A DNA stretch of 63,640 nucleotides, filler included, from Octopus bimaculoides (taxonomy: Eukaryota): the NCBI RefSeq assembly GCF_001194135.2. It is 8 parts of 7 records of this genome, joined end to end, with 100 filler letters (N's around TTAATTAATTAA, not from the genome) between each part and the next. Parts side by side here need not be neighbours in the genome. Positions count along the whole stretch, not along the records: positions 25,890 to 37,078 come from NC_068987.1; positions 37,179 to 44,780 come from NC_068999.1; 6 more parts are not named here. One strand, written 5' to 3'. The notes under the pieces were generated by a model. It had not been told where the DNA came from. It saw nothing but the letters and a program-made list of their open reading frames with translations, and did no database searches. Below are positions 5,201 to 37,189 of the stretch, piece after piece. A program made the position numbers and the translations under genes. Within the stretch, counting starts at the first letter, position 1. Every line of letters starts with the position of its first letter.

Positions 5201-6227
5201 AACAGACGGAAAGAAAGTAGTAGAGTGTTGGCGTGGAATAAATAAGTAAATATATATATAAATGGTTGGGCGAGTAGAAATGTTCAAGAGTCTAAATGAT
5301 CGAGTGATCAAATGGCTGTTCTGGATGTGGGTTTAATAAGATAAATATATACATAAGGAGATTTAGCAAACAAATTATAACCGTTGTGTGTTTTGAGTCC
5401 GCATTGGTTATATACTCAGTATATACTGAGCTCATCTTTGCTGCTTTTTGTTTTGTTCGTTTTCATTTTTCCGTTAAATATTTTTGAACTTTCCTTTCCC
5501 TTGAGGTTCTCACGGGAAGTTGTATCCAACTAGACACTTCTCCAGAATTTCTTTCCTTTAGCATGCACCGTGTATGTTTTGTGTGTGTGTGTATGTATGG
5601 GAGGGGGTATAAGTGAGTGTGTAGGTTCAGATACAAGTAAATAGACAAACAGACAAGCACTCACATATCTATAATATTGTGTGTGCGTGTATGGGCGTGC
5701 GTGCACGTGTGTATAGATGTACATACATATATTAATACATACGCACACATCCACACATACATTTACATATAGATATGAATGTGTGTATGTGCATGTGTTT
5801 GCGCACATATGTGTGTCTGTGTCTATGTATATATGTATGTATGCATGTATGTATATTTGTATGCACGTATGTATATATGTAAATTTGTACAATTGTGAAT
5901 AAATTCTGTTGGTTTTACCATGTTTAAAAAATGCGTTTGTTCAGTTCCTCTGTGTGTGTATGTGTGTATGTACGTGTATGAGTTGTGTATTTGTATATGC
6001 TTGTTTCTTGTTCGTGTTTGTATGATTGTGTACGTTTATTTGCGTGTGGTCGTGCGTGCCTGGGCAAAATATATCCCCTGTCCACTCTTTTCATTTCCCA
6101 TTTTTACTTTCCCTTCTTCCTTTTCTTTTAGTTTTTACCCCCTCTTTTCTCTTTGCATAACGAAACGAACTCATGTCCAGCTTCTTTGTTGCCGTTTTAT
6201 GAGAAATTCAGTGGCACAGCGTGCCAT

Positions 6228-26312: not shown

Positions 26313-26637
26313 GTAAGTTGTCAGAGTCAATATTTAAAGACATTATATTGCAAGAATCTACCATGATTTTGTCCGCATATTCTTGATTGAATGGCAGTCT
26401 TTTAGTGTCCTGTTTTGTAAATAAATCCTGATTAACAACTTGTCCGAGATACGACATGTTTTAATCTGAAACTCCAATATCAACGTATAACTAACGGAGA
26501 ATATCTAGTTCTTGAATATGGTTTGAGATAAGGTTGAGAAACGCTTCTTTTCGTAGGACTCTTTAAAAACTTAATAAAAACATGCGAAGAAATCAAGGTG
26601 CCCACATGGCAAGCTGCTTTATATCGCAGAACGAGAA

Positions 26638-26970
26638 CTATTTCATATTTGAGTCACGGAACGTTACACTCGAACCGTCATTCGCTGTTGTCAACTTGGG
26701 AACAAAATCACCTCGTTTTAGAGAAACCGGAATCTTGAAGTTTGGTTGACTTTTTTCAACTTCTTTGAATACATGAAGTCTCCTGTTGTCGGAGCTATAG
26801 TATTTCCCGTCTTTTTCGTAAACGTCAATAGATGGGAAGTCGTTTGGCGATTTCTTACCAACTTTAATATCATGAATAGCATTTAATAATGGTTCCCCGT
26901 TTTGAAAAGAAGACTTAATAGTATCTTGAGAATAACGGATATCTCTTGGATTCATTTGTTGGTTAGCCAT
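26638..26970 (-). CDS. Intact intronless 110-aa protein, probable ParB/sulfiredoxin-like fold (Tox-ParB-like, DNRRL motif)
   Basis: Complex, non-repetitive ORF: MANQQMNPRDIRYSQDTIKSSF...FPSIDVYEKDGKYYSSDNRRLHVFK. Good ATG context (CCAACATGG). A paralog at 36153 shows codon-phase divergence (16 synonymous-only codon changes, one in-frame 3-nt indel), which supports coding status. The fold call comes from motif recall only. Confidence 0.8.
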   Translation of the reverse strand: MANQQMNPRDIRYSQDTIKSSFQNGEPLLNAIHDIKVGKKSPNDFPSIDVYEKDGKYYSSDNRRLHVFKEVEKSQPNFKIPVSLKRGDFVPKLTTANDGSSVTFRDSNMK

Positions 26971-27333
26971 GTTGGTTTACAAATATCAACTTCGTATTCA
27001 ATGAAGAAGTAACTGTTGTGGGTAATAAGAATGAAAGTGTTTTGGTTAGTATATAACTCGTGATTTCTATATTTGACGGAGAAAACAGTTTTAAAAACGT
27101 AGAATCAAAATTTATATTCACGTCAGTAGATAGCCGGTCCTTATTTTATCGAATCGAATTAATGAAATTCAAAGAAGGTTGACAGACTTGTATAATCTTG
27201 GACACTATCCGGAGGTATTGAAATGTGTTCGTAGAGACAAGTGTTTCGTGGTGACTCAATCCTGTCTAATCAAGTGTAGGCGAAGTTCAGTAAATATATA
27301 TTGAAGTGGCGGTGGTGGTGGTTGGTGTGTAGG
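26971..27333 (-). promoter_or_regulatory. Upstream/promoter region of the 110-aa gene
   Basis: TATAAA on the minus strand (27111-27116) and an AP-1 TGA(C/G)TCA site (27252-27258), both conserved in the paralog's upstream region. Confidence 0.6.
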
Positions 27334-28062
27334 ACGGGTGTGTTGTTTATGCCCATGTGTGTGATTGTATGCGTGTCTGTGTGAGTGTGTTGTGTTGGTG
27401 AGAAGTGTATGTGTATGTGGGTGTGTGTGGATGTGCGTGTGTGTGTGGGGTTGTGAGTGTTAGGTATGGGTGCGTGTGTGTGTGGGGTTGTGAGTGTTAG
27501 GTATGGGTGCGTGTGTGTGTATGCGCGTGTGTGTTTATGTGTGTCTGTATGTGTGTGCNNNNNNNNNNNNNNNNNNNNNNNTGTGCGTGTGTGTGTGGGG
27601 TTGTGAGTGTTAGGTATGGGTGCGTGTGTGTGTATGCGCGTGTGTGTTTATGTGTGTCTGTATGTGTGTGCACGTGTGTGTATATTTTTTGTGCGTGCGT
27701 GTCTGTGTATATTGTGTATGTTTTCGTGCGTGCGTGTGTGTTGTGTATGTGAGTGAGTATTGTGTATGTGAGAGGTGTGTTTATGTGTGTGTGCGTGCGT
27801 ATGTGTGTGAGAGCGTAAGGATGTGTGCCAGGTATGTGTGTTATTTTGTGTGTGCACACCTCTGTGTGTGTGTGTGCATGCGTATGCGGCTGTGTATGTA
27901 GGCGTGCGCGTATATATGGGTGTGTGTGTGTGTGTATAGGGCTGTGTAAGGTGTGTGTCTCTACCACTGTGCGTGTGTGTGTGTGTATATACGTGCGTTC
28001 GTCTATATGTGTGTGTGTGAGGGCGCGCATGTATGTTTGTCATGTGTGTGGGCGGTATATAT
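27334..28062. repeat. Degenerate (TG)n-rich tract with ~50-bp internal repeats (GTGTGGGGTTGTGAGTGTTAGGTATGGGTGCG...)
   Basis: Directly visible. The His/Thr-rich ORFs here are low-complexity artefacts. Confidence 0.9.
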
Positions 28063-28583
28063 NNNNNNNNNNNNNNNNNNNNNNNNNNNNNNNNNNNNNN
28101 NNNNNNNNNNNNNNNNNNNNNNNNNNNNNNNNNNNNNNNNNNNNNNNNNNNNNNNNNNNNNNNNNNNNNNNNNNNNNNNNNNNNNNNNNNNNNNNNNNNN
28201 NNNNNNNNNNNNNNNNNNNNNNNNNNNNNNNNNNNNNNNNNNNNNNNNNNNNNNNNNNNNNNNNNNNNNNNNNNNNNNNNNNNNNNNNNNNNNNNNNNNN
28301 NNNNNNNNNNNNNNNNNNNNNNNNNNNNNNNNNNNNNNNNNNNNNNNNNNNNNNNNNNNNNNNNNNNNNNNNNNNNNNNNNNNNNNNNNNNNNNNNNNNN
28401 NNNNNNNNNNNNNNNNNNNNNNNNNNNNNNNNNNNNNNNNNNNNNNNNNNNNNNNNNNNNNNNNNNNNNNNNNNNNNNNNNNNNNNNNNNNNNNNNNNNN
28501 NNNNNNNNNNNNNNNNNNNNNNNNNNNNNNNNNNNNNNNNNNNNNNNNNNNNNNNNNNNNNNNNNNNNNNNNNNNNNNNNNNN

Positions 28584-28915
28584 AGGTTAAAAATATAGCG
28601 CTGTTTCAAGTGGAGTCGCGAGGGAGTGGACCCATGGTGCAGGGCGAGGCCAAAAACGGAGATGTTAGAGGGGGAGTGGTTGGCCAAGTGGAAGTGACGG
28701 GCGACGGGGGAGTCCGAACCTAGCCGAACGTCCCTTAGGTGTTCGGTGAAACGGTCGGCCAGCTGGCGGCCCGTCTGCCCCACGTAGAGTTGGTTGCATA
28801 GGTTGCATTTGATGCAGTAAATTAGGTTGGAGGAAGTGCAGGTGAAACTGTGTGGAATGTGAAGAGTGTGTAGGTTCGACCCTGTGACAGAGTTGGTGAT
28901 GAAGGGGCTTATGAA
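28584..28915 (-). mobile_element. Penelope-like element GIY-YIG endonuclease fragment
   Basis: Translation FTCTSSNLIYCIKCNLCNQLYVGQTGRQLADRFTEHLRDVR...VARHF. Confidence 0.85.
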
Positions 28916-29039
28916 ATTTATACATAAATATTTGCTTAAAATAACATATATTTTTACATTTATTTATTTAACAGTATTTAACAAATAGGTTTATTGTCAA
29001 TTAAAAGATTTCGATTAAAAAACATATATAAAATCAAAT

Positions 29040-29113
29040 TGCCCATAAAAAGACCCCCTGTCTTGTCCTTGCGGACCCCCTTTGGTCTGTGGACCACAGT
29101 TTGAAAACCCCTG
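29040..29113. mobile_element. Probable terminus of a hAT-type element
   Basis: GCGGACCCCC...GTGGACCACAGTTTGAAAACCCCTG resembles hAT subterminal and TIR sequence. The other end was not located. Confidence 0.4.
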
Positions 29114-29251
29114 ATTTAAAGGACGATGACCAATGGAAGAGGTTTTCCTTCACAACCAATCTACCAAGCATGTGGTTGCTGAAAATCAACACTAAATTAA
29201 AAGAAAGCATGCATACATATGCACATGCATACATACATACATACATACATA

Positions 29252-30065
29252 CAGGGTGGGTGAAAAGTAACTAGGCATTAGAAATTACTTAAAGAACTTT
29301 TAGTATCACTGAAGTCCTGACAAAAACATTTTTTAAACAAACAACACTAATGAAAATTTCTTATTTTCTCATTTCTTATTTTGCAGATGGCCAGTCACTT
29401 GATTGTTCAGGAGCGAACTAACAAAGCATCACGCTATGAAGTGTGGAATTCCAATATTTTGGTTCAGAGATGGTGGCATGCATGGAAAGGTAAGCATGCA
29501 ACACTACGTCCAGAGACAACCAAATCCTGATCAGCAGAGAACGTGATAACGGTGCAAGAAACGTTTAATTGCAGCCTGCAAAGAATCAACACGTCAAGTG
29601 GCTCATGAAAGTAGACTAACAAGACACAATATGTACAGTGTTGTATAAAGAATTGAATTTTCATCCATGGAAACCCCATTGTGCACAGGAGCTAAAAGCT
29701 GAAGACTGTGACCACAGAAGTCCAGAACTTTAAAAAGTCCAGATCTTACTCCATGTGATTTTTACCTGAGAGGTTACACAAAAGAGGTGTACAGGACAAA
29801 ACCTTGCACACTGGACAACTTGGAGACATGGATTCAGGAGGTTCTCAATGATATCCCACACAATGTCCTTCAGAAGGTTGTTCATTCCATCCCTGGCCAT
29901 TTGAGAAAGCTGGTTCATGCCACTGGTGCTTACATTGAAATATATAGATTTACTTTCATTTTCCCATGTAATAAAGAACATATATGATTTATTTCAATAA
30001 ATTTGTAAAAGGAATATGGATTTTATTACCAATTTTTAATGCCTATTTACTTTTCATCCACCCAG
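29252..30065 (+). mobile_element. Internally deleted Tc1/mariner element (~814 bp)
   Basis: TIRs CAGGGTGGGTGAAAAGTAACTAGGCATT / AATGCCTATTTACTTTTCATCCACCCAG, flanked by TA within (TACA)n. Remnant transposase motifs SPDLTPCDFYL and VYRTKPCTLDNLETWIQEVLNDIP. Confidence 0.88.
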
Positions 30066-30893
30066 TACATACATACATAAATACATACATACATACATAC
30101 ATACACACATACATACATACAGGCCTTTTGTGACACCCTTACAGGCCTTTTGTGACACCCTTAAAATCAGGAACTTTTGAGCACACACTTGTACATACAT
30201 ACATAGATAGTGGAAGTCAACTTCTGACTCTGCAAGATGGCTTTCTAAACTCATTTCACTCGAGGAAGCATCTCAAGTTTAGTCTCTCCATCTCCAATGA
30301 CACCTCATATGTCCTTATACTCCAACCACAAGTCGGCCTTCCAGCAACATCCCAGCTACAGGGAAGTTGAGTCTTACAATATCAAATGACTCCACTGGCT
30401 AACCCACAAATTCTACTATACAAAGTGTGCGAGAGAACATGCTGGCTATCACATTAGTAGAAAGGGGCACCCCCGTGATCATGCTTGTTGCTGAATAGAC
30501 CTAACTTTGAGAAGTCGACACAACCACATTGGTGACACGAGGACTGTTTCGTGCCCTTCTTAGATTGAGGGGTCATGTCCTACATATATTTTCCAACATG
30601 GTTTAATTCAGTATAAGTAGACCTGTTGTTCACGAATTTTCAAATTACGAGTATAAGTTCAGATCAGTTAATCATGATTTTATTCAACATATTCCCTCTC
30701 AGGTGCACATACTTATTGCAGTGGCCCTTCAGTTTTTCTAAGCCCTGTAAATGAACTTGGAAGTTTCGGCCTCCAACCAGGCCTTTTGCAACACCCTTAA
30801 AAACAGGAACTTTTCAGCACCCCCATTTAATACTTACATACTTAATTTTCTTGTGGGTGACTTCAATATTTATGCTAAAAATGTTAAGAGTGC

Positions 30894-30930
<37 letters not shown>

Positions 30931-30932
<2 letters not shown>

Positions 30933-31420
30933 ACAGCTAGAATTAATAACAAAATTTCCAGCTGACATAGGATTGAAATTTTGCCAAAAGAAATGTTCAT
31001 ATTTGATTTTTCAATATGGAAAATCAGCCCCCATTCCCAAGATTCAAAACCTGTGCATTAATTGTTTCACCATCTCTCCTGTTTCACATAAAACATTCTA
31101 CAAGCACCTAGGCATTGATGAAATTATATCACATGAAGGCAATGTGAATAAAGATAGATTGAATCAAGAGTACAATACTAGACTTTAAAAAGTGTGGCAA
31201 TCGGAACTCTCCTTGTACAAGACAATATCCCAACATTTGAGATACTTGACTGATTTGTGGAGGAAATCCACCCCATAGACATTAAATCCCACAAGATACT
31301 GGCATCAATTGAAAATCTTCACAGAAACAGTGATATCGACAGATCCTAACTAAGAAGAGACGAAGAAGATAGTGAATTGGGATCAGTGGAGACAGCCTTC
31401 GAATGTCATCTAGTCTCTCT
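30931..31420 (+). mobile_element. RLE-type (R4/Dong-like) LINE RT C-terminal fragment
   Basis: ADIGLKFCQKKC...YKHLGIDE...EYNTRL*KVWQSELS...IDIKSHKIL...LHRNSDIDR. Confidence 0.75.
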
Positions 31421-32049
31421 CAGACAGCACTTCTGGGGACATTGTTGTTTGGGACAGACAAGTAAAAGTATATACCATCATAATTCAGCTGTCCTGCTGA
31501 TGTAAATATTTCTTTGAAGAGCACAGAGAAAGAAGACAACTTAGGACTGCTTTGAAAGCTCCAGCTTCTATATCCAGATTCTGAATTCACATTTATGCCA
31601 ATAATACTAGGTGCACTTTGATTTGTGAGTAAATGTATATGAGACAATCTGGTTAACTTAGTGTTTCCAGAAGAAGAAATCAACCAACTAACTCGCTCAG
31701 TACATGTGCAATCTGTGAGATAGTTAAGCTATATAAAGATATAAACTATGTATAGATATTTGTCTACATATAGGCCTCTTTGTCTTTTCCAAGTATTAAT
31801 AAACCCACTTGAGCCTGTACAAATCCTACGCTAGCATCTTCATCTAAATAATCCCATTTAGCCGAGAACCACTTAAACTACTTACACGCAAACATTCACC
31901 TCCCAACCCCCATTCGCTTTACACACTCCATAATAAATTATTTTACACCTACACAGGGCTTCCTCCATTACTACGAACTTCCTACAACTTTAAGACCTAA
32001 AGACACATAAATTCCTTACTCACCCTGGACTGAGTAATCTGGATAGAGT

Positions 32050-33002
32050 TAATATAGGATAAAATTTTCAAAAAATTTTATTAGTGGCCAGCATATTAAA
32101 AAATACCTTTAAAGGTGAAAATTATAAACAATTTTATAAGGGCAAAAGAAAAAATTCCTATCCCAAATATGCTGAGAATAGACTTTAAATCGTCAATAAC
32201 CACATATAATTCATCACTATAAGAATGCGTTTCGAAGCAAGCTAACAGAAATTTCTAAAAAATTCCGTTATTACCGAATCGGTCCAATCATCATCAGTAA
32301 ATACGTTAAGAAATAAATGAAATAGTTACTTGCACTCATGGAAGAAGCAGATGCAAAGCCATAAGTACACTTAAGTACCCCAAATATATCCAAACAGAAA
32401 TTTTGCAGTATACCTCAAGATACGTGCAACCTGACTGAAAATTCTCATAGAGTAAGAGACAGTCTGGAAGTGAATGGTAATAAATTTACATCTAATATAG
32501 GATAAAATTTTCAAAAAATTTTATCAGTGGCCAGCATATTAAAAAATACCTTTTAAGGTGAAAATTATAAACAATTTTATAAATAAGGGCAAAAGAAAAA
32601 AATCCTATCCCAAATATGCTGAGAATAGACTTTAAATCTTCTGGACTGTCTCTTACTGTATGAGAATTTTCAGTCTGATTGCACATGTCTCGAGGTATAC
32701 TGCAAAATTTCTATTTGGATATATTTGGGGTACTTAAGTGTACTCATGACTTTGCCTCTGCTTCTTCCATGGGTGCAAGTAACTATTTCATTTATTTCTT
32801 AACGTATTTACCAATGATGAGAAGAAAATTCTTTATGAATTAACTCAGAAATTGGACCGATTCAGTAATATGGGAATTTTTTAGAAATTTCTGTTAACTT
32901 GCGTTGAAATGCATGCTTATAGTGATGAATTATATGTGGTTATTGATGATTTAAAGTCTATTCTCAGCATATTTGGGATAGGAATTTTTTTCTTTTGCCC
33001 TT
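32050..33002. repeat. Nested tandem + inverted duplication (A-B-A-B'-A')
   Basis: A = 32050-32190 and 32493-32637; B = 32191-32470; the reverse complement of B and part of A lies at 32638-33002. Confidence 0.85.
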
Positions 33003-33029
33003 GTTTATAAATAAGGGCAAATTTTGGCA

Positions 33030-33300
33030 TTGAAAGCTACACAAATGCCAGGACAGGTCGACACTGCACAATGCCATCACGCTTTAGGACCAGTTACTGA
33101 AACATCCTGGGTTTCAGGGGCCCACAGCTTTTTAATATTCTCCTAAAAAGCCTGAGGGACCTACACAAAGTGGATGTAGGTATTTTCAAATCAAAACTGG
33201 ATTTCTTCCTGTTGAGAGTCCCAGATGAACCTACCTCGCATCAAGAGGTGTAAATGAGGGTAGTGACATCAAACTCCCTTATTCACCAAATGCCACATAT
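33030..33300 (+). mobile_element. CR1-clade LINE 3' remnant
   Basis: LGFRGPQLFNILLKSLRDLHKVDVGIFKSKLDFFLLRVPDEP. Confidence 0.75.
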
Positions 33301-33737
33301 TAGAGGAGCCTCTCAATAATAAGAGTAGCAAAATGGCAGTGCCCCAGCATGACCGCAGCTCTGAGCTGAAACTAGATAAAAATATATAAAGGGTTGGACA
33401 AAATAATGGAAATACCTATCATCATAGCATCAGATATCATCAAAAAAAAAGTAATTAAAATTCATTAAAATGACAGATCAATTGGACTTTCAAAGAAGTC
33501 AAATTGTTGGTGCTTGTATGGCAGGCGCTAGCATAATGAAAACAGCCAAAATGTTTGGTGTATCAAGAAGTACTGTCTCAAAAATAATAATAGCCTTTGA
33601 GAAAGAGGGAAAAACCATCTCCTCAAAACAAAACTCCGGAAGAAAACCAAAACTTTCTGATAGGGACCGTTGGACTCTTACGCAAATTGTTAGAAAGGAT
33701 CACAAAAGTACAGCTCCCAAAATTACAGCAGAGCTTA

Positions 33738-33985
33738 CAGTTCTATATTCAAAAGATGAGGAATTATGTACATTATTTACATTAAACGGATATTTGTCCT
33801 CATCTTGTTTGTTGTTAACACAACGTTTCGGCTGATATACCCTCCAGCCTTCATCAGGTGTCTTGGGGAAATATTGAAAATTTCCCCAGGACACCTGATG
33901 AAGGCTGGAGGGTATATCAGCCAAAACATTGTGTTAACAACAAACAAGATGAGGACAAATGTCCGTCAAATGTAAATAATGTATT
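33738..33985. mobile_element. Palindromic non-autonomous (Penelope-derived?) element with two hammerhead motifs, 10-bp TSD
   Basis: ~100-bp inverted arms span 33769-33983. TSD GCAGAGCTTA at 33728-37 and 33986-95; the sister Tc1 copy carries this 10-mer only once. Confidence 0.85.
33817..33862 (-). ncRNA. Minimal type-I hammerhead ribozyme motif
   Basis: The minus strand reads GACAC-CUGAUGA-A-GGCUG(GAGGGUAUAU)CAGCC-GAAA-CG-UU-GUGUU: intact core, 5-bp stem II, 5-bp stem I, GUU cleavage triplet. Confidence 0.7.
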
Positions 33986-34752
33986 GCAGAGCTTATTGAC
34001 CACCTTGAGAACCCAGTTTCCACAAAAACTGTTTGCCGGGAGCTGCACAAAGCCGGATTTCACAGGAAGGCTGCAATCAGAAAACTACTACTGTCAAAAA
34101 TAAATGTTGCAAAGCGTTTAGCTTGGAGTAAAAACCTACAGAATTGGTCCACAGAGCAGTGGAAGAATGTTATTTTCTCGGATGAGTCATCCTTTACCTT
34201 ATTTCTGACCACCGGCAGAGTATATGTAGGGAGACAGCAAAAAAAACCCAAAAAACTTTTGATCCAAAGTGCCTTCTTCCAGNNNNNNNNNNNNNNNNNN
34301 NNNNNNNNNNNNNNNNNNNNNNNNNNNNCCTTCATGGCAGAATTAACAGTCAAGACTATTCAAGCATTTTATTTGATCAAATTTATCCTATGGTTGCGGA
34401 ACTGTTTCCAGAGGGAAATGCAATCTTTCAGGATGGAAATGCAGCAATTCACACAGCTAAAGTTGTTACTGAATGGCACGAGGAACATTCTAATGAAGTC
34501 AAACATCTTACCTGACCACCACAGTCCCCAGATCTCAATATTATGGTGCATTTTAGAAAAATAAGTAAAGAGTTGATATCCTCCACTATCATCACTACAA
34601 GAACTGGAGACTATTTTAGCTGAAGAATGGACAAAAATACATTTGGAAACAATTCAAACTTTGTATGTGTCCATACCTCGTAGAATTCAAGCTGTAATTA
34701 CTGCCAAAGGCAGTCCTACACCATGTTAAAATAAATTTGTTGGAAATTTTAA

Positions 34753-34917
34753 GGCGCAGGAGTGGCTGTGTGGTAAGTAGCTTGCTTACCAACCACATGG
34801 TTCCGGGTTCATTCCCACTGCGTGGCACCTTGGGCAAGTGTCTTCTACTATAGCCTCGGGCCGACCAAAGCCTTGTGAGTGGATTTGGTAGACGGAAACT
34901 GAAAGAAGCCTGTCGTA

Positions 34918-34976
<59 letters not shown>

Positions 34977-35008
34977 ATATGTTTGTGTGTCTGTGTTTGT
35001 CCCCCCAG
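34753..35008 (+). mobile_element. CORE-like tRNA SINE (5' part)
   Basis: GGCGCAGGAGTGGCTGTGTGGTAAG...GGGTTCATTCCC...CCTTGGGCAAGTGTC: A box, B box and CORE-like segment. Confidence 0.9.
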
Positions 35009-35293
35009 NNNNNNNNNNNNNNNNNNNNNNNNNNNNNNNNNNNNNNNNNNNNNNNNNNNNNNNNNNNNNNNNNNNNNNNNNNNNNNNNNNNNNNNNNNNN
35101 NNNNNNNNNNNNNNNNNNNNNNNNNNNNNNNNNNNNNNNNNNNNNNNNNNNNNNNNNNNNNNNNNNNNNNNNNNNNNNNNNNNNNNNNNNNNNNNNNNNN
35201 NNNNNNNNNNNNNNNNNNNNNNNNNNNNNNNNNNNNNNNNNNNNNNNNNNNNNNNNNNNNNNNNNNNNNNNNNNNNNNNNNNNNNNNNNNNNN

Positions 35294-35592
35294 ACTTATT
35301 CTATCGGTCTCTTTTGCCGAACTGCTAAATTACGGGGACGTAAACACACCAGCATCGGTTGTCAAGCGATGTTGGGGTACAAACACAGACACACAAACAT
35401 ATACACACACATACATATATATATATATACATATATACGACGGGCTTCTTTCAGTTTCCGTCTACCAAATCCACTCACAAGGCTTTGGTCGGCCCGAGGC
35501 TATAGTAGAAGACACTTGCCCAAGGTGCCACGCAGTGGGACTGAACCCGGAACCATGTGGTTGGTAAGCAAGCTACTTACCACACAGCCACT
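35294..35592 (-). mobile_element. CORE-like tRNA SINE
   Basis: Near-identical reverse complement of the 34753 copy. Confidence 0.9.
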
Positions 35593-35757
35593 ATCTCCAG
35601 CAAGTTATCTTTAATTATTCTTTCTCAGAATACGTCTTTATCAGTTGGGAAATACAAAATATTTACTTTCATTTTAATTTCGAAGAAAATAATATGATGT
35701 TGTTATGGGTGTGTGTAGTTTTTGTTAGGTCATATCCTTTTCATTGAAAAACTTTTT

Positions 35758-35786
35758 ACTTTCACTTTCACTTTCATTTCCAAGAA
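35758..35786. promoter_or_regulatory. Tandem IRF-E/ISRE-like repeat fused to a GAS-like STAT site
   Basis: ACTTTCACTTTCACTTTCATTTCC (reverse GGAAATGAAAGTGAAAGTGAAAGT) overlaps TTCCAAGAA (TTC-N3-GAA), ~370 bp upstream of the paralog ATG. Confidence 0.45.
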
Positions 35787-35796
35787 AGGAACCAAC

Positions 35797-36152
35797 CTAC
35801 ACAACACCCTCCACTACAATATATATTTATCGAACTCCACTTACAACCCATTAGACAGGATTGAGTCACCACGAAACACTTGTCTATACGAACACATTTC
35901 AATCCCTCCAGATATTATCCAAGATTAAACAAGTCTGTAAACCTTCTCTGCATTTCATTTATTGGATTCGATAAAATAAGGAGCGTCTATCTACTGAAGT
36001 GAATATAAATTTTGATTCTACATTTCTACAATTGTGTTTTCTCCGTGAAACTTAGAAATCACTAATTATATACTAACCAAAACACTTTCAATTCTTATTA
36101 CCCACAATATCAACTTCTTCATTGGATACAAAGTCGATATTTATAAACCAAC
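35797..36152 (+). promoter_or_regulatory. Upstream/promoter region of the second paralog
   Basis: AP-1 TGAGTCA (35862-68) and TATAAA (36004-09). Homologous to 26971-27333. Confidence 0.6.
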
Positions 36153-36476
36153 ATGAATCGCACTACAATGAATCCAAAAGATATCTGTTATACTCAGGAT
36201 ACAATCAAATCCTGTTTCCAAAACAGGAGATGATTAGTTGATGTTATTGATGACATTAAACGTGGTAAAATTTCGCCTAACGATATAGAGGCTATGAACG
36301 TTTACCAAAGAAATGGAAAATACTATAGTTCCGGCAACAGGAGACTTAATGTATTCAAACGAGTACAAGAATGGAAATCAGACTTGGAGGTTCCAGTTAT
36401 TCTAAAACCACCAGGTAGTTTTATTCCCAACTTCACAACAAAGAATGATGGTTTGAGCGTAGAAATCCGTGACTAA
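36153..36476 (+). pseudogene. Paralog of the 110-aa ParB/Srx-like gene with a single in-frame TGA at codon 27
   Basis: MNRTTMNPKDICYTQDTIKSCFQNRR*LVDVIDDIKRG...YYSSGNRRLNVFK...EIRD. About 59/107 residues identical by hand alignment. TGA at 36231-36233; otherwise open. Confidence 0.8.
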
Positions 36477-37189
36477 TGGAAAATATGGAATACTATTCGT
36501 TCTGCAACATAAAGCAGCATGCCATGTGGGCACCTAAATTTCTTCGCATGATTTTATCAAATTTTTAAAAGAGTCCTACCAGTAGAGGCGTTTCCCAACC
36601 TTATCTGGCATAGTTATAGATGCGCACCCGCCAAATTTGTTGCCTCATAACTTCCAGAAAAATGGATAAATTTTCAACAAATACCGCTTAGATGCTATAG
36701 ATTCAGAGTATACAGGAATTTGTGGGAAAGAAATTTCCGATGGGGAGAGGAGTTTCGAAAAATTCACTTGATCCGACTTTTCTCCAGCGACCACTTCAAC
36801 AGCTTCGTCCAGCCAACGATGACCACCGCCGTCGCCACATCAGCAACAAGAGTCTACGACTACTATCCAGCATCATCGTCATGACCAACACGATTCTACG
36901 ATTACTACTACCAAGCATCAATCTCCACCAGCGTCAACACGACTTACTATGTACACCAAACCAAACCTCTCTTCGATTCTGTTAGGTGACTCAGCTTCAC
37001 CACGATAAACAAACAGACAAGAGTTCTTAAACAGACAAGAAATTCTCAGCCAGCGACGAACATCTGTATAACAAGAATNNNNNNNNNNNNNNNNNNNNNN
37101 NNNNNNNNNNNNNNNNNNNNNNTTAATTAATTAANNNNNNNNNNNNNNNNNNNNNNNNNNNNNNNNNNNNNNNNNNNNTCTACCTCCCA

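Follow-up and report, generated by a model that had tools for sequence, protein, structure and literature searches.

An inverted pair of octopus Tox-ParBL1 gene copies with flanks that are probably younger than their coding regions

Two copies of an octopus Tox-ParBL1 gene, here A and B, lie as an inverted pair in the window (the whole stretch of Octopus bimaculoides DNA that was analysed, 63,640 nucleotides), and we consider it reasonably probable that they form a gene-conversion mosaic in which the flanks are younger than the coding sequence (CDS), rather than a pair shaped by diversifying selection. A CDS that outpaces its untranslated regions (UTRs) resembles positive selection, but silent sites and a third octopus DNA sequence (L001, from the independent run SRR11869385) indicate that the flanks are the younger part. 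The animal family concerned, which consists of Tox-ParBL1 domains that stand alone and derive from bacterial conflict toxins, is unstudied, and at least one young octopus pair within it is under strong positive selection.

BLASTN joined the two units in a single alignment with 657 of 817 positions identical (80%, ~815 nt), and repeat finding recovered the same arms; the inverted ~800-bp duplication described by a first-pass annotation of this DNA is thus real. Each unit holds an intronless CDS, and the two are arranged head-to-head with a spacing of ~9 kb. The features are as follows.

26526-27326, minus strand: copy A (BLASTN against copy B)
26971..27326, minus strand: 5' flank of copy A, a TATA-like box and then a presumed ~320-nt 5' UTR; 88% identical to B
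about 27291-27303, minus strand: TATA-like box of copy A
26638..26970, minus strand: CDS of copy A, an intact intronless 110-aa open reading frame (ORF) with a single Tox-ParBL1 (ParB/Srx-fold) domain
26526..26637, minus strand: 3' flank of copy A (presumed 3' UTR); 86% identical to B
27333..35790, no strand: spacer between the copies, with a GT-rich minisatellite, four N gaps and transposon debris
27333-28062: GT-rich minisatellite; A-B homology ends where it starts
27559-27581, 28063-28583, 34283-34328 and 35009-35293: N gaps in the spacer
32050-33012: foldback repeats in the spacer
33470-33835: Tc1/mariner-type HTH ORF in the spacer
34761-34974 and 35379-35592: inverted SINE-like copies in the spacer
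35605..35790, plus strand: sequence further upstream of B, homologous to L001 and lost from A
35791-36606, plus strand: copy B (BLASTN against copy A)
35791..36152, plus strand: 5' flank of copy B, homologous to that of A
about 35818-35829, plus strand: TATA-like box of copy B
35850-35885, plus strand: 36-nt run identical to A, in the 5' flank just downstream of the TATA box
36153..36476, plus strand: CDS-like region of copy B, 107 codons, probable pseudogene
36477..36606, plus strand: 3' flank of copy B, homologous to that of A

The TATA-like sequence CAATATATATTTA is identical across A, B and L001, and the 3' flank of A contains the block GCAGCtTGCCATGTGGGCACC...TTTCTTCGCATG; promoter and UTR roles for these flanks are presumed. 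The first ~20 nt of the B 3' flank are the counterpart of the last four codons of A, where the ancestral TAA was lost through a ~5-nt indel. Against L001, the BLASTN alignment of B begins at B-unit position 6. A GIY-YIG/Penelope reading of the ORF at 28584-28783 was set aside, Pfam giving no confirmation, and ARAGORN found no tRNA.

The first-pass annotation had seen no scaffold spacer between the copies, whereas four N runs separate them and place A and B on different contigs; their head-to-head orientation and ~9-kb distance therefore rest on scaffolding only. A paralog-chimeric assembly of this gapped short-read scaffold, in which contigs combine flanks and CDS from different paralogs, or an inversion that is itself a scaffolding error, would count against a mosaic, and the heavy gapping, with one gap bounded by an identical 89-nt sequence (a sign of imperfect contig merging), fits such an artefact. 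Yet no N run falls inside A or B or crosses a relevant frame, the longest exact run common to the two copies is 36 nt, shorter than most assembly graph switches would need, and the independent L001 carries the same colinear leader, CDS and trailer. We regard an assembly artefact as very unlikely.

By its sequence and predicted structure, the product of copy A is a stand-alone 110-aa Tox-ParBL1 (ParB/sulfiredoxin-fold) domain protein. Pfam returned sub-threshold noise for the A and B proteins with no model matched, and single-sequence and profile searches of PDB sequences gave nothing meaningful; the fold was therefore obtained through AF2 and Foldseek. The AF2 model of the A protein reached a pLDDT of 89.3 and a pTM of 0.83, and the best 39 Foldseek matches in the PDB were all ParB N-domains, Noc, KorB, sulfiredoxin or Atu1540 (probability up to 1.0, TM about 0.5). 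Tox-ParBL1 was defined as a predicted ParB/sulfiredoxin fold with a conserved N-terminal [ST] and an [NT][RT][RT] motif, mostly N-R-R, and metazoans were already among its carriers (Zhang, de Souza, Anantharaman, Iyer, Aravind 2012, PMC3482391). Copy A has both elements, in IRYSQD (Ser14) and DNRRL (N62-R63-R64), and among 17 aligned homologs N62 and R63 never vary and R64 hardly does. With phmmer, homologous domains were found at the C-termini of bacterial polymorphic toxins in FilH/CdiA, RHS and PT-HINT contexts, including P0091 (Fil_haemagg + DUF637; domain 2035-2133 of 2137), P0088 (RHS + PT-HINT; 896-997 of 1006) and P0057 (RHS); PF07591 is present on P0165, P0198 and P0089. In molluscs and tunicates the family has expanded, its named members there all being 'uncharacterized'; exact-protein look-ups of copy A, a 60-aa ORF of B, P0002 and P0231 yielded no record. 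Inspection of copy A revealed no signal peptide: the protein opens with the hydrophilic stretch MANQQMNPRDIRYSQ and enters the domain at residue ~6. It looks intracellular.

Copy B, which the first-pass annotation had treated as a CDS, is not intact. Its translation meets an in-frame TGA at 36231-36233 (codon 27), and near-invariant residues are altered (R12C, I48M, D61G, K92N), while the [ST] and N-R-R motifs are kept. B is probably dead, a pseudogene. A homology search with its translation returned no candidates, and thus no B-like protein or donor in the database.

Divergence between the copies is unevenly distributed. The flanks differ at 57 of 452 positions (12.6%) against 84 of 318 in the CDS (26.4%; Fisher p = 1.8e-6), with 41/339 differences in the 5' flank (87.9% identity), 16/113 in the 3' flank (85.8%) and a CDS identity of 73.6%. 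Among the codons, 46 change the amino acid, one is the stop, 16 are synonymous-only and 42 are identical. The earlier observation of better-conserved flanks is thus borne out, as are its hand counts of ~84 differences in 318 nt (~74%) and ~47 changed against 16 synonymous-only codons. A two-change-point likelihood fit placed the divergent block from ATG+3 to A-stop+4, with 95% profile intervals of −51 to +6 nt at the ATG and −12 to +48 nt at the stop of B; its likelihood-ratio statistic of 25.5 was reached in 0 of 200 permutations. CpG decay was rejected as the source of the CDS excess, since the contrast persists once CpG sites are removed (p = 2e-5). A separate repeat insertion as the origin of the flanks was likewise rejected on the colinearity of L001. 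Rfam searches at permissive E-values gave only sub-threshold miRNA-like matches, on microsatellites and a palindrome, and none in the conserved flanks.

Silent sites of the CDS share in this excess. The NG86 dS between A and B is 0.44±0.11, compared with a flank K2P of 0.13-0.16; third positions differ at 28 of 105 sites against 12.6% in the flanks (p = 8e-4), and codons with an unchanged amino acid hold 16 differences over ~36 silent sites (p = 8.6e-6 against the same flank value). Overall, silent divergence is 2-3.5 times that of the flanks. Protein-level selection cannot raise silent divergence, so this excess is not explained by selection on amino acids. The pairwise dN/dS is 0.68, and it lies below 1 on every branch (A, B and L001). 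Copy A is significantly under purifying selection (branch dN/dS 0.31, p = 0.009), while the B branch, on which much of the amino-acid divergence falls, is indistinguishable from neutral (0.74). The first-pass annotation had proposed diversifying selection on the protein, for which dN/dS above 1 with dS no greater than non-coding divergence would be expected; an omega of 0.68, a dS of 0.44 where the flanks give 0.14 and the premature stop in B speak against it for this pair.

Positive selection does occur elsewhere in the family. A young tandem pair in O. vulgaris (L002) has a dN of 0.139 and a dS of 0.043 (omega ~3.2) with near-identical flanks, 0.8-2.2% diverged. Its dN far exceeds its non-coding divergence (31/244 versus 61/2936, p = 2e-13), and its silent sites, with 3 differences in 71, are close to the 2% of the flanks. 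The idea of accelerated evolution is therefore sustained at the level of the family only. For the window pair, a scenario in which the flanks date the duplication and nothing but positive selection on the protein then drove the CDS apart could draw on this precedent, on the coincidence of the divergent block with the CDS borders and on the origin of the domain in bacterial conflict toxins; given the silent excess, the branch values below 1 and the stop codon in B, we consider it an unlikely account. In Mactra antiquata, a head-to-head pair (L003) aligns in its exons only (65-71%) and is uninformative for the flank-CDS pattern; L004-L006, with one copy each, were left out of the comparisons.

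Genealogical tests rest on the three DNA sequences A, B and L001. Upstream of the CDS, site patterns group A with B (AB|L 49, AL|B 8, BL|A 21), whereas within the CDS they do not (AB|L 35, AL|B 41, BL|A 23; chi-square p = 1.3e-5), and third positions alone behave similarly (AB|L 14, AL|B 12, BL|A 10; p = 0.025 versus upstream). Silent divergence per branch amounts to 0.167, 0.176 and 0.185 for A, B and L001, a star tree, against upstream branches of 0.076 for A, 0.029 for B and 0.176 for L001 (internal branch included). For both A and B taken together, the silent branch changes differ from the upstream ones (p = 1.3e-4), and the upstream A and B branches are themselves unequal, with 21 versus 8 changes (p = 0.024). 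In a GENECONV-like max-run test on the three sequences, the longest run of polymorphic sites at which A equals B fell in the 5' flank (p = 0.036). Together, the silent excess and the conflicting genealogy of L001 argue that the A-B ancestor of the flanks is more recent than that of the CDS.

Two further explanations bear on these branch lengths. Mutation targeted to the CDS, whether clustered and multi-nucleotide or deaminase-like, could raise dN and dS together, in keeping with the elevation at silent and replacement sites alike, its persistence without CpG sites and the local clustering of differences (e.g., codons 24-33 and 44-49). However, transitions and transversions are balanced in flank and CDS, the O. 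vulgaris pair lacks a silent excess, and age explains the star-like tree and its equal silent branches more simply, which makes such mutation extremely unlikely. Alternatively, the duplication could be as old as the silent divergence, with strongly constrained promoter and UTR flanks, a near-neutral CDS and a decaying B. The TATA box and presumed transcribed UTRs of the flanks, the 36-nt perfect run and the neutral-like B branch accord with constraint, but it would have to hold ~450 nt at ~20-30% of the silent rate even in a pseudogene copy, and no Rfam family or structured element was found in the flanks. The L001 leader, moreover, has kept pace with the silent rate (0.176 versus 0.185) and differs from A and B by indels of 38, 25 and 14 nt, which argues against strong UTR constraint; with short A and B branches beside it, the flank evolves at a roughly neutral rate on a different tree. 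We consider flank constraint unlikely.

The gene-conversion mosaic, suggested in the first-pass annotation as conversion restricted to the flanks, gains support from silent divergence ~3.5 times that of the flanks, from the L001 pattern conflict and from the equal silent branches. A and B would be two old paralogs of a Tox-ParBL1 gene with an intronless layout of TATA box, ~320-nt leader, ~330-nt CDS and ~120-nt trailer. Their CDS ancestor would be about as old as the ancestor of either with L001, and the ancestor of their 5' and 3' flanks roughly three times more recent. As the simplest mechanism we infer interlocus (ectopic) gene conversion between nearby inverted copies, which could have taken either of two routes. 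The flanks may have been homogenised and conversions in the coding segments lost, perhaps through selection keeping the CDS unconverted, or a recent inverted duplication may have been followed by replacement of the CDS of one copy by a single tract from a third, older paralog; homology searches found no such donor. Copy A would afterwards have remained under purifying selection, while B drifted and gained its stop codon. What speaks against conversion, beside the missing donor and the unequal upstream branches of A and B, is that both change-points fall on the CDS borders, to within some 50 nt. Random tracts would not be expected to end there, and this coincidence suggests that something else acted on the CDS specifically: homogenised coding sequence may have been selected against, or the donor tract may have been confined to the CDS.

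Conflict-toxin ancestry, expansion in molluscs and tunicates, and positive selection in O. vulgaris make it reasonable to regard the ParBL1 family as a candidate cephalopod system of intracellular defence or conflict, an idea testable with existing chromosome-level genomes. A bolder and highly speculative reading is a cassette-like system in which leader and trailer serve as recombination handles, diversified coding segments, including pseudogenes such as B, are swapped between paralogs, and bursts of positive selection follow duplication, maybe in an intracellular immune or selfish toxin-antidote role. If true, it would parallel in an animal the cassette exchange known from polymorphic toxins of bacteria.

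Interlocus conversion between inverted paralogs yields mosaic genes in palindrome arms and MHC-type families, in which segments under selection are spared homogenisation. As in those systems, the octopus copies are inverted and nearby, coalescence depths differ between segments, and the older block is the part on which selection would act; unlike them, homology spans only about 0.8 kb across a transposon-filled spacer, and the run test on three sequences gave the single conversion-like signal with p < 0.05. In toxin multigene families such as snake venom PLA2 and sea-anemone BDS toxins, UTRs and introns are conserved above the coding region (PMC3853724, PMC7285919). The octopus family resembles these in the greater likeness of the non-coding parts of the transcription unit, in its clustered, lineage-specific occurrence and in the omega above 1 of the O. 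vulgaris pair. The window pair departs from them with its omega below 1, raised silent sites and pseudogene copy, and the protein, unlike secreted venom, has neither signal peptide nor propeptide, so that with its intracellular-looking ParB-fold domain the venom analogy drawn earlier is weak. Compared with bacterial Tox-ParBL1, the octopus protein stands alone, lacking trafficking and repeat regions, and the 11 kb around the pair showed no immunity gene next to it, but it shares the ParB/sulfiredoxin fold, the N-terminal Ser/Thr and the N-R-R motif with homologs at the C-terminal tips of FilH/CdiA and RHS/PT-HINT toxins.

A unit of ~0.8 kb is present twice, inverted and head-to-head, in the piece derived from NC_068987.1 (25890-37078). 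Each unit consists of a 5′ flank (leader, presumed 5′ UTR), a coding sequence (CDS) and a 3′ flank (trailer, presumed 3′ UTR). Transcription is predicted to begin ~30 nt downstream of a TATA-like box. The two copies were joined by a single BLASTN alignment (657/817, 80%), and the same arms were recovered by a separate repeat search of the piece.

26526-27326 (-), copy A unit
26638-26970 (-), copy A CDS, an intact, intronless open reading frame (ORF) of 110 amino acids
35791-36606 (+), copy B unit
36153-36476 (+), copy B CDS-like region, with an in-frame TGA at codon 27 (36231-36233)

Divergence between copies A and B by segment
5′ flank, 41/339 differences, 87.9% identity
CDS, 84/318 differences, 73.6% identity
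3′ flank, 16/113 differences, 85.8% identity

These values confirmed the claim of the first-pass annotation that the CDS is more diverged than its flanks, and its hand counts proved accurate (16 synonymous-only codons; 46 replacement codons plus one stop). The contrast was significant by Fisher's test (p=1.8e-6) and persisted after removal of CpG sites (p=2e-5). A two-change-point likelihood fit placed the divergent block from ATG+3 to 4 nt past the stop of A, with profile intervals of -51 to +6 nt (ATG) and -12 to +48 nt (stop of B); the observed likelihood ratio was reached in 0/200 permutations.

The database proteins nearest to copy A are P0002, an uncharacterised protein of Octopus bimaculoides (61% identity), and P0003 (58%), which is encoded by L001, a third octopus sequence on a 1-kb Logan contig. 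The copy A ORF (ending DSNMK) runs four codons beyond those of B, L001 and P0002 (26638-26655 versus 36470-36497), the ancestral TAA, retained in B and L001, having been lost from A by an indel of ~5 nt. Its product has no hydrophobic N-terminus and is therefore not an obvious secreted toxin. Besides its stop, copy B carries changes at near-invariant family residues (R12C, I48M, D61G and K92N). Parsimony estimates on the three sequences A, B and L001 (L) gave the following CDS branch values.

Branch A, silent divergence 0.167, pN/pS 0.31, purifying (p=0.009)
Branch B, silent divergence 0.176, pN/pS 0.74, indistinguishable from neutral (p=0.38)
Branch L, silent divergence 0.185, pN/pS 0.49 (p=0.054 versus neutrality)

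Thus, copy A is under purifying selection, and copy B is a probable pseudogene.

Selection on the protein alone is one rival explanation for the diverged CDS. Nei-Gojobori estimates for A versus B were dN 0.30±0.04, dS 0.44±0.11 and omega 0.68. Silent sites were clearly elevated over the flanks, where K2P distances were 0.13-0.16. Third positions differed at 28/105 versus 12.6% in flanks (p=8e-4), four-fold sites at 6/22, and the 58 codons with unchanged amino acids held 16 differences in ~36 silent sites versus 57/452 in flanks (p=8.6e-6). Divergence at silent sites is 2-3.5 times that of the flanks, an excess for which protein-level selection cannot account; selection alone thus fails at least one test and is unlikely on the three sequences compared.

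L001 is colinear with A and B through leader, CDS and trailer, and its addition gave the site patterns below.

Site patterns supporting each grouping
Upstream, AB|L 49, AL|B 8, BL|A 21
CDS, AB|L 35, AL|B 41, BL|A 23
CDS third positions, AB|L 14, AL|B 12, BL|A 10

Upstream and CDS patterns differed (chi-square p=1.3e-5). Upstream, the L branch (including the internal branch) was 0.176, equal to the silent rate, while A and B were short (0.076 and 0.029), indicating approximately neutral flanks with a long A-B internal branch that is absent from the CDS. We conclude that the flanks of A and B coalesced ~3 times more recently than their CDSs. Constraint on the UTRs, which would keep the flanks alike, also fails at least one test and is unlikely on the same three sequences. 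The L001 leader carries indels of 38, 25 and 14 nt, which argue against strong constraint. In a GENECONV-like run test of the three sequences, the longest A=B run lay in the leader, with modest significance (p=0.036).

Pairs of related genes were also found in Octopus vulgaris (locus L002, OX597839.1:32569961-32590437) and in the clam Mactra antiquata (locus L003, CM103821.1).

L002, 3531-5294 and 9875-10477, ParBL1 genes from a recent tandem duplication
L003, 2916-4357 (-) and 10001-11281 (+), ParBL1 genes, head-to-head

Both L002 genes encode a long acidic SEVELKP-type N-terminal repeat, whose number is very unequal between copies. Their 2.67 kb upstream are 97.8% identical and their 266-nt trailers have 2 differences, versus 34 in the 315-nt ParBL1 domain (31 replacement and 3 silent, p=0.049; dN 0.139, dS 0.043, omega 3.2). 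Domain dN far exceeds non-coding divergence (p=2e-13), with no elevation of silent sites. Targeted hypermutation of the CDS would raise silent sites, as is seen between A and B, but the absence of such a rise in this young pair argues against a CDS-targeted mutator; this rival, too, fails at least one test and is unlikely on the three sequences. The L003 pair is alignable in exons alone, and is hence uninformative on flank versus CDS divergence; a C1q-domain gene adjoins it.

Copies A and B are located on separate contigs, so their inverted arrangement and ~9-kb distance depend on scaffolding. An assembly chimera likewise fails at least one test and is unlikely on the three sequences. All N runs are confined to the spacer, both copies are uninterrupted, and none of the relevant reading frames is broken by a gap.

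27559-27581, N run, with the same 89-nt sequence to its left and right (27470-27558 = 27583-27671)
28063-28583, N run
34283-34328, N run
35009-35293, N run

The 89-nt repeat at the 23-N gap probably reflects either two overlapping contigs left un-merged or a tandem unit of 113 nt within a GT-rich minisatellite (27333-28062). Other spacer features were also recorded. SINE-like copies at 34761-34974 and 35379-35592, inverted and 93% complementary, lie on either side of the 285-N gap; ARAGORN called no tRNA in the element, and the one adjoining copy B is also found beside an O. vulgaris ParBL1 gene (L002, ~5575-5660), which, with the nearest database proteins, marks the source of the DNA as an octopus. 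A Tc1/mariner-type transposase helix-turn-helix ORF (33470-33835; Pfam HTH_29 and HTH_23, HTH_SB sub-threshold) runs into a near-perfect palindrome (arms 33769-33875 and 33877-33983, 93%, 1-nt spacer), for which Rfam gave just sub-threshold miRNA-like matches. Nested inverted repeats (32144-32288/32851-32995 and 32288-32470/32638-32820) and direct repeats (32050-32194/32493-32641, 97-98%) within 32050-33012 point to a transposon of foldback type or to a duplication that was later rearranged. An ORF fragment at 28584-28783 (-) (…GQTGRQLADRFTEHLRDV…), truncated by the 521-N gap, had no Pfam match; we presume a resemblance, unconfirmed, to a GIY-YIG/Penelope-type endonuclease. A run of ~33 A at 30899-30931, within transposon debris, probably marks the tail of a retroposon.

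The favoured explanation is that interlocus gene conversion gave the pair a mosaic ancestry in which the flanks are younger than the CDS. The step in divergence at the CDS borders suggests either selection against converted coding segments, which would have left the CDS old, or a tract limited to the CDS and donated by a third, unseen paralog, which would have replaced the CDS of one copy; protein homology searches, including with the B translation, found no donor for such a tract. The first-pass interpretation is partly supported: of its two readings, gene conversion is supported by the silent-site excess and conflicting genealogies, while accelerated evolution is not demonstrable in the older A/B pair but is right for the family, as the O. 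vulgaris omega indicates.

An exhaustive phmmer search returned 1235 homologs. Some form the C-terminal tip of bacterial proteins of the filamentous-haemagglutinin/CdiA type or the RHS/PT-HINT type, and many are small bivalve, tunicate and octopus proteins; those bearing a name are all labelled hypothetical or uncharacterised, and a Pfam search gave no matching model for the A and B proteins. Copy A contains the motifs IRY-S-QD and D-N-R-R-L, and its AF2 model is confident (pLDDT 89), with Foldseek matches to ParB-N, Noc, KorB or sulfiredoxin and nothing else. Motifs, model and matches agree with the published definition of Tox-ParBL1 (PMC3482391), a domain that the same paper already recorded from metazoans. 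The clam genes have one intron each, whereas the octopus genes have none. Overall, copy A adds a new and uncharacterised member to the Tox-ParBL1 family, which is itself known, and the evolutionary pattern of the pair is likewise of a known kind.
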